A stretch of 64,000 nt of DNA from the NCBI GenBank assembly GCA_010909165.1, contig VJWM01000134.1, forward strand, positions 248,001 through 312,000, given 5' to 3'. The position numbers and the translations under genes are program-made. The notes beneath the pieces were generated by a model. It made no database searches. It saw only the letters and a list, made by a program, of their open reading frames with translations, and was not told where the DNA came from. Source of the stretch: Anthoceros angustus (taxonomy: Eukaryota; Plantae; Anthocerotophyta). Positions 43,873-47,417 of the stretch are shown here, piece by piece; positions within the stretch are counted from its first letter, which is position 1; each line of letters starts with the position of its first letter.

Positions 43873-46800
43873 CTACAACTTAGCACTGAGCTCCTTCAGC
43901 TTCGAATAAATCTCTGGACCTTGAGGGAGGTTGTTGTCACCTACCATGAATGTGTGCAACTGCCCCTCGTGCTCCATCCAGCTCTGGCCGGTTTTCTTAC
44001 ACGCGTCAGCAGAGTCTCGGGAGTCCTCGATCTCCATTGCCTTATCCCACAGTTGAGCATGGGCATAAATGTTTGACATAAGCACGTATGCTGCGCCCTT
44101 CGATGGTCCCAACTTGATTGCCTGCTGAAAGGCTTGCTCTCCCAGCTCTACGTGGATGTACTTTCTGCAGGCACTAAGCAAGGAAAACCACACTGCCAAA
44201 CTGGGTCGCATGGGCATGAGATGAATCACCCTTTTCGCCTTGCTGAGAAGCCCAGCGCGGCCAAGAAGATCTACCAGGCTGGCAAAATGGGAAGTTGTTG
44301 CACTGATGCCATAGTCCCTGCCCATGGATCTGAAGAACTCCAAGCCTTCCTCAACCTTGCCTGCGTGACTGCATGCTGAGAGAACAGAGACGAAGGTAAC
44401 TGCATCCGGTCTCATGCCTGTCTGCTGCATTTTTCTGAAATTCTGTAGGCTCTGTTGACTCTCTCCTAGTCTGGCATATCCTGCGATTATGGCAGTCCAT
44501 GATACCACATCATGCTGAGACACCAGATCGAATACTTGAATAGCATGCTCCATGCTCCCACACTTACCGTAGGCATGAATCAGACTTCTTGCAACAGTCA
44601 CACTGTGCTGCAAACCCAGTTGAATGATATCCTGGTGGATTTGAAGGCAGGTATTCAGGGCACCTACGTTGCTGCAGGCCTTCAGGATACTGAGAAAGGT
44701 AGCCTCATTTTGGGTCACGCCGTTTTCTTCCATTTGCAAGTAAAGCTGCACAGCCTTCTCACCCTGATCTTGCTCGGCGTACCCAGAAATCATCGCATTC
44801 CAGGAGACCACATTTCGCTGACCTAAATTGTCAAACACATTCCGGGCATCCTCAACACTCCCACAAGTTGCATACATGTGGATAAGAGTATTCCCCACAA
44901 ATGTATCTGATGCATAACCTGCCCTTATAATCTCTGAATGGATGTCCCTCCCTAGCTGGAGGGATTGTACTTTCACACTTCGCTCGTTGACGATCCTCTC
45001 TTCCTCCATGTCTGCAACAAGGGTACATGCTTTCAGCACACTGACAAATGTGCGGTCATCAGGCCCAACACCAGCCTCTTGCATTTGAGCATAGAAGTGC
45101 AAGGCTCTCTCCCCTTGCTCCTGCTGTGCATAAGCTGTTATGATTGCATTCCATGACACTACATCCTGCTGGGACAACTTGTCAAACACATGCCTCGCAT
45201 CCAAAATGCTGCCACATTTTGCATACATATCAACCAGTGTATTCCCTACAAAAACATTCGACTCATATCCTCTTCTCCTAACCGCAGCATGGATCGCCCT
45301 CCCTCTTTCCAATGATGCCGCTTTAACAGACTGTCCACTTACGACAGTCGGTTCCTCCATAGATGCCACAATGCCACATGCTTTAAGCACGCTAACAAAG
45401 GTCCGGTCATCTGGCTTCACATTGGCTCGTTCCATTTCTGCAAAAAGTTTTAAAGCGTTCTCACCCTGTTCTTGCTGTACATACCCTGTGATCATTGTGT
45501 TCCAACACACCACATTGCGCTGAGAGAGGGAATCAAACACTCGTCGTGCGTCGAAGATATTTCCACATTTTGCGTACATGTGAATGAGACTGCTACCCAC
45601 AAACTCATTAGAATCCAAGCCCCTTCGAGAAATGTCTTCATGAATTGCCTTGCCAACTTTCAAAGCCTTTCCTTTATCAAGCTGGCCTTCAGGCGCTTCT
45701 CTCTCAATGACTGCAAGCATACCACATGCTTTGAGCACACTAACAACCGTTCTTTCATTGGGTGTCACGCCTGCCTCTTGCATTTCCAGATAGAGCTGCA
45801 AAGCCTTTTCCACCTGTCCATGCTGTACATATCCTGCAATCATTGTCGTCCATGACACTACGTCTGGGTTGGACATTCCATCAAACACCTGCTGTGCATA
45901 GGTCATGCTCCCACATTTTGCGTACATAGCAATAATACTTGCACACACAAAACTCTCAGAATCCCATTTACAACTGACAACATCGAAATGAATCCGCCTG
46001 CCCTTTTCAATATCCCCCAAGAGAGCACACACCTTCAACATAGCCACAAGTGTGTACTTGCTTGGCTGAATACCTCCATCTTGCATTTGCGTGTAAAGCC
46101 TCAGAGCCTCTCGAGGTTGTTTGTGCTCAACATACCCTGATATCACAGCTGTCCAAGAGAACACAGTACGTTTGGATAGCGTTGAAAATACCTGCACCGC
46201 ATCTGCAAGACTTCCACACTTCACAAACATATGCACCAGAAGTTCCCCCAGATAGCTGTCCTGCTCAAGCCCGTGCTGAATAATTTGCGCATGCACTTGC
46301 TTGCCCTCAGTCAAGGCCTTCTTCTTGACACACACCTGCAACAGATGTCCATAAGTCTGAACTGAGGGCACAAGGTCCATGGTGTGCAAGGCATTGAGTG
46401 CTTTCTGGAGGTGTCCCTCGCGACATAATCTCTGCAGCTCCAGGTCATCCTCGGAGCACGGTGCGGTAGGCCCGCTAAATCTACCACCGTTCTCTTGGTT
46501 TGATGGCAAAGAAGCCAGCTGTGCTTCTACCCACGGCGGCTTAAACCAACTATTGATCCACAAAACCTCGTTCTTTGACTTGTGCCTAAAGTCAGGACGA
46601 GTAGGAGTTCTCTGCAGCAGATCCGCATCGAAGTCAGCATACGCACTCGCAACCACAAAAACACACCTCCTTACACTCCAAAAAATCCCATGCTTTGAAC
46701 ACGAATCCACAAGTCCCAGTTCTTTCCACAGTCCAAACACCACCTTATCCAGTCTGTTGTCCCACCACTGTGAAGGATCTGCAAAGAACTCCTGCCAGAG

Positions 46801-47417
46801 ATGGCTCAGCCGCTCTCTCCGCTCCTGCTCATTCTCTACGCCTACCAAACCAGAACAGCATGTCAGACGAGAAAAAATCCACAAACATCCCACACTAATT
46901 CCTCAACCGAAGCCATGAACTTATACATACACCTACAAAGAAAGACGCCTGTTCCTGACCCTGCTCTGAAGACGGCGTGTTACGGGGCCTGGCCACACGG
47001 TCTCTCCATAATACATCCCTGGTAAGCCTTTCACCAAAATCGGGCATCTCAGGATCTGCCTGCAAACACCAGCACAACTGTAAACAACGAAATGTGCCAA
47101 CCAAATAACAATCAGATGACAACAACCCGTACCTCGGTGGACCTGGAATCCCGCCATCCTGCCGGATCCACAAAAGAGGGTTGCCACTTCCCTCCCCCAC
47201 GGTCGCCAGCTGAAGATACGGCTGACCCTTTTGCATCGGCAACCAGCATCAGCCCCGCTGTATTCCGAGACGCCCGGGCAGAGCAGACAGCAGGCGGGAC
47301 GGTACACCATTGCCCTGCAGCTTCACTCCATCCTCCCATGGCAGACTGCTTGTAGCTCTTGCTGGGCACATTGCCACAGCTGAGACTAGACGACAACATG
47401 CTCGATGACGATGGCAT
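43873..47417 (-). CDS. PLS-class PPR protein (E+ type, no DYW) with two N-terminal OSB-type PDF motifs
   Basis: Predicted exons 47417-47133, 47059-46933, 46841-46744, 46611-43873 (all GT-AG); Ser-rich presequence; many P-L-S repeats (VVSWTTMIAGYVQHG...); ends with a PG-box-like KKTGQSWME and E+ then stop. Confidence 0.9.

Follow-up and report, generated by a model that had tools for sequence, protein, structure and literature searches.

An expressed E+-type PPR gene of the hornwort Anthoceros angustus with N-terminal motifs homologous to the PDF motif of OSB proteins

Few plant gene families are as large or as well studied as the PPR editing factors, whose N-termini are usually dismissed as targeting peptides. 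A gene in a 64,000-nucleotide stretch of the Anthoceros angustus genome (contig VJWM01000134.1, positions 248,001 to 312,000 of the forward strand; hereafter the window) raises the question of what else may stand at this end. An earlier note on this DNA had described a PPR editing factor fused to two tandem PDF motifs, the motif of plant organellar ssDNA-binding (OSB) proteins, each split by an intron at the same position. Is this a real and expressed gene, are these PDF motifs, how did they reach a PPR protein, and what would they do there?

The PDF-PPR gene is nuclear and intact, and it is both spliced and expressed. Its coding sequence of 1073 codons (47417-43873, minus strand) is distributed over 4 exons and encodes a PLS-class PPR protein ending in E/E+ (Table 1). 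A 3002-nt contig of the public run X1 aligns to the window with 0 mismatches from 47433 down to 44109, its exon 4 part covering 44109-46611, and lacks exactly three GT..AG introns: 47132-47060, 46959-46842 and 46743-46612. The RNA label of this run is itself a guess, and the run is taken as RNA because these three canonical introns are missing from its contig. The joint of the 73-nt intron 1 is also present in runs X2, X3 and X18 (two related organisms). The 73-bp and 132-bp introns called in the earlier note are thereby borne out, both of them GT..AG, in phase 0 and skipped in the X1 contig, and the peptides that it quoted (KWQPSFVDPAGWRDSRSTE, ADPEMPDFGERLTRDVLW, LWQEFFADPSQWWDNRLDK and RTPTRPDFRHKSKNEVLWINSWFKPPWV) are present in the sequence; its set of introns was incomplete, the one between the two motifs having been missed. 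Removal of this intron 2 is required, since the reading frame is otherwise lost, as frame arithmetic tells. It splits a Gly codon 15 amino acids ahead of the W of PDF copy 2. A donor at 46932, which would give a 91-nt intron, is ruled out by the transcript contig, which splices at 46959 (118 nt). Intron 3 is in frame and has no stop codons, and exon 4 begins with RTPTRPDFRHKSKNEVLWINSWFKPPWV. The E+ end and the stop codon are known from DNA alone, as the perfect-match X1 contig ends at 44109. At the other end, the Ser/Ala-rich presequence of ~76 amino acids looks like a transit peptide.

Table 1. Features of the PDF-PPR gene and of the PDF motif used for comparison, in positions of the window.
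Feature	Position	Strand	Description
Exon 1	47133..47417	-	285 nt, 95 codons; ATG at 47417
Leader in exon 1	before PDF copy 1	-	~76 aa, Ser/Ala-rich (translation)
PDF copy 1, N-half	47189-47133, end of exon 1	-	KWQPSFVDPAGWRDSRSTE; profile 13.1 bits, nodes 11-28
Intron 1	47060..47132	-	73 nt, GT..AG, phase 0, within PDF copy 1
Exon 2	46960..47059	-	100 nt; begins ADPEMPDFGERLTRDVLW; ends in phase 1
PDF copy 1, C-half	exon 2	-	ADPEMPDFGERLTRDVLWRDRVARP...; profile 14.8 bits, nodes 31-54
Intron 2	46842..46959	-	118 nt, GT..AG, phase 1, between both PDF copies
Exon 3	46744..46841	-	98 nt; ends LWQEFFADPSQWWDNRLDK
PDF copy 2, N-half	exon 3	-	...RLSHLWQEFFADPSQWWDNRLDK; profile 38.4 bits, nodes 3-29
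Intron 3	46612..46743	-	132 nt, GT..AG, phase 0, within PDF copy 2
PDF copy 2, C-half	46507..46611, start of exon 4	-	RTPTRPDFRHKSKNEVLWINSWFKPPWVEAQLASL; profile 50.5 bits, nodes 31-68
Rest of exon 4	43873..46506	-	PLS-type PPR array, E, E+, stop codon at 43875-43873
E motif	about 44160-43972	-	Pfam
E+ motif	about 43956-43879	-	Pfam
Comparison PDF motif	57247..57405	-	intronless; 54.6 and 72.7 bits

The class of the protein is read from exon 4. Pfam detects PPR_2 at 2.4e-110 and PPR at 1.6e-88, then the E_motif at 4.6e-9 (36.8 bits, for a cut-off of 27.3) and Eplus at 8e-4, which with 19.5 bits is under its cut-off of 24 and covers positions 2-27 of 28, up to the stop codon. Natural E+ proteins likewise terminate at position 27 of 28 of this model. 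The array of P, L and S motifs followed by E and E+ places the protein in the E+ subgroup of the PLS class. The C-terminal DYW domain with HxE and CxxCH that defines a PPR-DYW editing enzyme is lacking: Pfam gives no match to the DYW deaminase (PF14432), and the CxDCH, HSE and DYW/GRP signatures are absent from every minus-strand frame over 3 kb downstream, with no DYW remnant. The earlier designation as a PPR editing factor therefore holds for the PLS-class PPR protein with E/E+, while 'editing' is to be taken as its putative role, since the protein is of the E+ type and has no deaminase domain of its own.

The described E/E+ editing specificity factors of the PLS class share with this protein the organelle-type leader, the long PLS array, and E and E+ followed by the stop codon. 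None of the described members is known to carry a folded domain after the transit peptide and ahead of the first PPR motif, which is where the PDF motifs are found here. Furthermore, most PLS genes are intronless, most of them having been spread by retroposition, whereas this gene has three introns. A full-length PPR search did not find an annotated orthologue: the best match overall is 63% identical, and the identity of the PPR part to any named protein is at most ~46%.

The two PDF copies are of unequal quality. The signature, ~50 amino acids long with Pro-Asp-Phe, WWDNR and KHK, was scored with a profile of 103 PDF domains, and each search took either a single exon or the unspliced in-frame ORF. 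Copy 2 is canonical, both halves scoring high (Table 1) and 16/16 near-invariant positions being kept. Copy 1 is decayed: its halves score far lower, it keeps 10/16 of these positions, and K29, H39, K40 and PxWV are gone. Taken singly, its halves have E values of 0.13 and 0.16 when the 2766 six-frame pieces that make up the window are all scanned, among which they rank 3rd and 5th; as they are also adjacent and colinear, with a break at node 29/30 like that of copy 2, their likeness to the PDF motif goes beyond chance. Introns 1 and 3 fall at the same profile node. Of the two tandem motifs first proposed, copy 2 is thus a full PDF and copy 1 is above chance but degenerate, and the latter may be non-functional. 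No direct DNA repeats of at least 40 nt were found between the two PDF exon pairs, the copies being too diverged. The comparison motif of Table 1 forms the N-terminus of a neighbouring PPR-DYW:KP gene of the same window (54234-57702), the PPR region of which is frame-broken as assembled. Pfam, which has no PDF model, finds no family on the three short exons. An AlphaFold2 model of the PDF, made on a contiguous Sphagnum homologue (pLDDT 86.8, pTM 0.73), predicts a folded module, for which neither Foldseek against the PDB (best E 6.5) nor VIA-align against 48,161 chains (best Z 3.7) gave a usable match.

OSB proteins harbor the same ~50-residue signature, W..FF.DP..WWDNR..K..P..PDFKHK.T...LW....PPWV, and tandem copies occur in them as they do here. 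Homology of the N-terminal motifs to the OSB PDF motif, as suspected in the earlier note, is supported by searches in both directions. BLASTP of the window against a Riccia OSB protein, which has PF00436, gives an E value of 1e-19, with a 44-aa gap in the alignment that coincides exactly with the 132-nt intron 3; copy 2 is 66% identical to the PDF of this liverwort OSB. Reciprocally, a profile built solely from five PPR-borne PDF motifs finds 1080 representative proteins, 63 of the best 150 being of the OB/OSB type, and retrieves annotated OSB2-like (4e-34), OSB3 (2.6e-28) and OSB1-like (1.7e-23) proteins. The N-terminus of a Diphasiastrum PPR protein, used as a query, matches SSB-domain proteins of Calypogeia (E 8e-17) and Riccia (E 4e-13). 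The core residues are conserved alike, to at least 80%, in 27 PPR-borne and 43 OB-borne PDF domains. In a poorly resolved domain tree of 69 columns the PPR-borne PDFs cluster (4 label changes vs 22 when shuffled), which shows clustering only and does not establish a single origin. The gene product is nevertheless not an OSB protein, since Pfam finds no OB-fold or SSB-like domain, PF00436 included, on exons 1-3 and only ~76 low-complexity residues precede copy 1. The topology differs as well: here the PDF is N-terminal and followed by the PPR array, whereas OSB proteins have it at the C-terminus, after the OB/SSB-like domain.

The introns show how the motif came to a PPR gene. The phase-0 intron between WWDNRxxK and xxPxxPDFKHK is common to this gene and to the OSB genes of Riccia and Calypogeia, and the same intra-motif intron is found in a Sphagnum PPR-DYW gene and a Selaginella PPR gene. 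The Diphasiastrum PPR gene P0201 has it twice, in the same doubled exon layout and with a decayed first copy. The phase-1 intron in the Gly codon ahead of the motif is shared by liverwort and Populus OSB genes, Sphagnum and Diphasiastrum PPR genes, and this gene. It is not seen in the Selaginella PPR gene, the model of which begins at the motif, and Populus OSB1 has kept it and lost the intra-motif intron. The PDF module is an exon pair, in OSB genes alike: phase-1 intron, exon A, phase-0 intron, exon B. As these intron positions are common to OSB and PPR genes, the module reached PPR genes by a DNA-level fusion that preserved its introns.

The distribution of the architecture bears on the age of the event. 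Among the 119 closest PPR homologues, 24 have one to three PDFs, and these 24 belong to seedless plants wherever the organism is named; PDFs are absent from all Cryptomeria and Ginkgo rows among the 119. This architecture recurs in Sphagnum, Selaginella, Diphasiastrum, Adiantum and Calypogeia, in genes whose products have one to three PDFs at the N-terminus and bear no other annotation than hypothetical or PPR protein. Many of these proteins terminate in a DYW deaminase, whereas the one described here has nothing beyond E+. Judged by these comparisons, the architecture is common to liverwort, moss, lycophyte and fern PPR genes and is not a local event; the fusion is ancient, early in land-plant history, and the PDF was doubled by duplication of the exon pair after it. 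The exon shuffling onto a PPR scaffold that had been proposed for this gene survives as a DNA-level event in which introns were kept, not as a local one. The earlier note knew of no functional description of this architecture, and no published description of it was found in the literature searched.

What would the PDF modules do? We lean, at somewhat better than even, towards an intact and expressed E+ PPR gene that gained OSB-derived PDFs by DNA-level fusion and whose PDFs grip single strands. On its RNA, a PPR tract lies with its N-terminus facing 5', so that the PDF modules are expected just upstream of the PPR footprint. They would act there as a sequence-unspecific auxiliary grip on single-stranded nucleic acid, which may raise the affinity or prevent the target from folding. 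This task would fall to the intact copy 2, with copy 1 as a relic or a spacer. As the protein is of the E+ type and has no DYW domain, the deaminase would be needed in trans.

The single strand held by the PDFs could also be DNA: bound to ssDNA or to the displaced strand of an R-loop, they would tether the protein to the nucleoid, and the PPR tract would meet its RNA co-transcriptionally. The motif is described as ssDNA-binding, with ssDNA preferred over RNA (PMC6963530; PMC4166229). The PDF of AtOSB1 is reported to suffice for binding to ssDNA (PMC6963530; PMC4166229), and the reported preference of AtOSB1 and AtOSB2 for ssDNA over RNA (PMC4166229) favours a DNA tether over RNA binding. OSB1 is reported to act on R-loops in mitochondria (PMC8330923), and the conservation of the same residues in PPR-borne and OSB-borne PDFs suggests a like ligand. 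Such a tether would be costly, however, as hundreds of paralogous PPRs would compete for ssDNA sites, and contact with RNA fits at least equally well for a PDF that stands in cis next to the PPR tract, on its RNA-5' side. We regard a DNA tether as rather unlikely.

A role of the PDF in assembly appears improbable. The module would then oligomerise or dock OSB or editosome partners, for an E+ protein maybe a trans deaminase; indeed, a protein without its own DYW domain needs a partner, AtOSB2 is reported as a tetramer, with no stated tetramer-forming part (PMC6963530), and no solved structure was found to match the PDF fold. The conserved PDF residues are, however, aromatic and basic (W, K, H, R), which is typical of nucleic-acid contacts, and PDFs also occur on DYW-containing PPRs (P0002, P0003, P0004) and are therefore not tied to a missing deaminase. 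Least probable of all is that the PDF exons are inherited baggage on a PPR array that alone matters, or that the whole gene is a decaying paralogue, as the clear decay of copy 1, the frame-broken neighbouring PDF-PPR gene and the absent DYW domain could suggest: copy 2 retains all 16 invariant or near-invariant positions, the frame is open across three correctly spliced introns with mRNA present, and the protein stops where natural E+ proteins do.

The auxiliary grip on single strands preferred here would have a functional analogue in seed plants, where the trans-acting helpers MORF/RIP and ORRM assist editing factors. The analogy (see also PMC10226603) is limited to function: the helpers of seed-plant editosomes act in trans and the PDF in cis, and their sequences are unrelated. 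A wider proposal, which we put forward tentatively, is that the PLS editing factors of land plants ancestrally had the PDF as a built-in helper, as a single-strand clamp in cis or a nucleoid anchor, and that this arose from one fusion of an OSB-derived 5' part to a PPR gene in the land-plant ancestor; seed plants would have lost the PDFs, and trans helpers of the MORF/RIP type would have taken over. As a nucleoid anchor, the PDF would make editing co-transcriptional.

Many editing-type PPRs of liverworts, mosses, lycophytes and ferns, and the one described here, contain a conserved module of DNA-maintenance proteins that is predicted to be folded, which links organellar DNA-binding with RNA-editing machineries. 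Its conserved introns form a rare clear record of domain gain, by DNA-level fusion and exon-pair duplication as opposed to retroposition. Being intact and expressed, this copy is a good one for cloning, and the PDF can simply be added or removed, in experiments as in designer PPR editors. The PDF is also a candidate explanation for how editing factors operate in lineages that do not have the helper proteins of seed plants.

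The PPR gene under study is a single gene of four exons, translated exon by exon, whose exon total is 3222 nt (1073 codons plus stop) and whose three introns all have GT..AG borders. Pfam recognizes its PPR array (PPR_2, 2.4e-110; PPR, 1.6e-88), an E motif (36.8 bits, exceeding the cut-off) and an E+ motif that stays below threshold and reaches the final residues ahead of the stop. A DYW domain is absent from the gene according to Pfam, which matches no family in exons 1-3, and a DYW-like signature is not found within 3 kb 3' of the gene.

Exons and introns of the PPR gene under study (window positions)
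Feature	Position	Strand	Length	Content
PPR gene	47417 to 43873	minus		four exons
Exon 1		minus		Ser/Ala-rich leader, ending KWQPSFVDPAGWRDSRSTE
Intron	47132-47060	minus	73 nt	
Exon 2		minus	100 nt	begins ADPEMPDFGERLTRDVLW
Intron	46959-46842	minus	118 nt	
Exon 3		minus	98 nt	ends LWQEFFADPSQWWDNRLDK
Intron	46743-46612	minus	132 nt	
Exon 4		minus	2739 nt	begins RTPTRPDFRHKSKNEVLWINSWFKPPWV, then long PPR array

The exon structure is documented by a 3002-nt contig from the public sequencing run X1, which aligns to the window with 0 mismatches in four blocks (44109-46611, 46744-46840, 46959-47058 and 47132-47433); two of its junctions are ambiguous by one base, and the canonical GT..AG sites settle both. 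The 73- and 132-nt introns proposed in the earlier note are exactly those spliced out, as is the 118-nt intron, which that note did not list. Since the contig lacks three canonical introns, it is spliced mRNA, despite an 'RNA' label that is the tool's guess. The joint of the 73-nt intron is also found in runs X2, X3 and X18, from two related organisms. The documented mRNA extends only to 44109, the 3' end of the contig. Over 43700-43927 (the last 18 codons and 3' flank), contigs of very high word depth (~3500 in X1) and ~5% mismatches point to a strongly expressed paralogue or repeat at another genomic site, which probably explains the break of the perfect-match contig.

The unspliced in-frame ORF retrieved PPR proteins of Diphasiastrum complanatum and Sphagnum fallax sharing its N-terminal motif. 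A Diphasiastrum N-terminus, in a search sized so that shorter proteins could match, retrieved proteins of the liverworts Calypogeia fissa (E 8e-17) and Riccia sorocarpa (E 4e-13), each harboring an SSB domain (PF00436) and a C-terminal PDF, the motif of plant organellar ssDNA-binding OSB proteins. BLASTP of the unspliced ORF against the Riccia protein (E 1e-19, 40 of 61 aligned residues identical) leaves a sole gap of 44 residues, exactly the translated 132-nt intron. The claimed OSB-type identity holds in a profile built from five PPR-borne motifs only and searched against 1.84 billion representative proteins: it yields 1080 matches at E <= 1e-3, among them 'protein OSB2, chloroplastic-like' (Asparagus), 'OSB3' (Anthurium) and 'OSB1, mitochondrial-like' (Populus). 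The best 150 of these 1080 include 63 with an OB/SSB region resembling liverwort OSBs and 14 PPR proteins. Some of the matches (P0019-P0023) consist of 8 to 13 tandem PDFs (719-1160 aa), with an OB region in one and no OB or PPR part detected in the others.

Two tandem PDFs had been claimed; the second is complete, while the first is present in decayed form. A 103-domain profile matches copy 2 at 38.4 bits in exon 3 and at 50.5 bits in exon 4, and this copy keeps every invariant or near-invariant position of the family. With the same profile the halves of copy 1 reach 13.1 and 14.8 bits, and when the whole window is scanned each half on its own is of borderline significance (E 0.13 and 0.16). 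Copy 1 still has W, P, W, D, R, PDF and LW and no longer has K29, H39 and K40 (profile positions) or the PxWV. Because its halves lie next to each other in colinear order and are split at the profile node where copy 2 is also split, copy 1 is accepted as a decayed PDF. Elsewhere, FNPSWVHIKVA at 418-480 (minus) matches the profile end (10.3 bits, window-wide E 0.08), a match that may be fortuitous or may be left over from a further copy at the window edge.

The fold was predicted on a homologue of the window copies, the contiguous PDF of a Sphagnum PDF-PPR protein (P0003:57-125), with a 103-sequence alignment. The model (mean pLDDT 86.8, pTM 0.73) consists of three short strands flanked by a helix at either terminus; neither Foldseek nor VIA-align found a solved structural relative.

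Intron positions come from an exact exon-chaining script that mapped each protein to its genomic locus. The OSB genes of Riccia and Calypogeia have a phase-1 intron in a Gly codon, 18-25 residues upstream of the motif's W, and, as in the window gene, a phase-0 intron inside the motif, between ...WWDNRxxK and xNPKAPDFKHK. Both occur in the Sphagnum fallax PPR-DYW gene; the Selaginella moellendorffii PPR gene has the phase-0 intron and no phase-1 intron, its gene model starting 8 residues ahead of the motif. The Diphasiastrum PPR gene P0201 has two rounds of phase-1 (Gly-codon) intron, exon A (N-half, 80 nt), phase-0 intron and exon B (C-half), the last exon B being fused to the PPR array and the first copy being the decayed one. 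The window gene has the same layout, except that its initial coding exon also includes exon A of copy 1. On these gene structures, the PDF unit is a two-exon module between phase-1 introns, common to OSB and PPR genes, and such flanking introns allow it to duplicate in frame. The common intron positions show that it reached PPR genes as intron-bearing DNA and not via retroposition. The split of lycophytes from this lineage sets a minimum age for the doubled PDF, unless the same doubling arose twice. OSB introns 1-3 (phases 2, 0, 1) are conserved from liverworts (two loci) to Populus nigra OSB1, which retains the phase-1 Gly-codon intron and has lost the PDF-internal one. A 2026 OSB survey describes variable 'insertions' at PDF positions 19-30; the PDF-internal intron lies in this stretch, and some of the insertions might be splice-site annotation artefacts.

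A neighbouring PPR-DYW:KP gene (54234-57702, minus, ending ...CSCKGRP) has an intronless PDF at 57247-57405, indicating that intron loss also happened within the Anthoceros angustus genome. With several frame switches in its repeated PPR region (~55300-55820), it is, as assembled, a pseudogene or a mis-assembled tandem repeat. Integrase-like and gag-like retrotransposon-like ORFs (31855-36466, minus) and a short peptide repeat, (EQGADLLVRAP)n, at 24900-26100 place the PPR genes amid transposon remains. An ORF at 61538-62413 (minus) is clearly actin in sequence (...DLAGRDLTD...) and appears to be a single actin exon.

Named PDF-PPR proteins occur in Diphasiastrum, Selaginella, Adiantum, several Sphagnum species and Calypogeia. 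Among the 119 closest full-length homologues of the window PPR array, 24 have one to three PDFs, and those from Cryptomeria and Ginkgo have none, which fits, in this small sample, a restriction to seedless plants. PPR-borne copies cluster in a poorly resolved domain tree (4 label changes versus 22 shuffled), on which a single origin is possible.

The PDF of AtOSB1 can bind ssDNA on its own, and ssDNA is preferred over dsDNA or RNA by OSB1 and OSB2 (reviews, PMC6963530, PMC4166229); OSB1 reduces mitochondrial R-loop levels (PMC8330923). The set of conserved aromatic and basic residues is the same in the PDFs of PPR and of OSB proteins, so that both probably do the same kind of job, that of holding a single strand. 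In PPR-RNA complexes, the N-terminus of the PPR tract is directed to the 5' side of the RNA site. Because of these two features, the conserved residues and this orientation, we somewhat favour a PDF that would grip RNA in cis, without sequence specificity, directly upstream of the PPR footprint. Tethering of the protein to nucleoid ssDNA or R-loops, the binding preference of OSB1 and OSB2 notwithstanding, is a rather unlikely first rival to this RNA grip; a protein-docking module or a functionless relic is less likely.

The earlier note knew of no functional description of this architecture, and none was found in the literature searched, most subscription journals lying outside it, so that 'undescribed' is provisional. 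Within that literature, only one replication review combines the PDF motif with pentatricopeptide, and the WWDNR signature occurs in no plant paper. The 2026 survey admitted only OSB genes with an OB as well as a PDF domain, 182 in all, and mentions neither PPR nor introns; a 2023 review on the maturation of organellar RNA is without any such domain. The PDF-PPR observation is confirmed, and its structural and evolutionary reading is supported and extended. What is new here is transcript proof of splicing for a PDF-PPR gene, an intact copy of E+ type, intron positions common with OSB genes, and a conserved doubled PDF exon pair.
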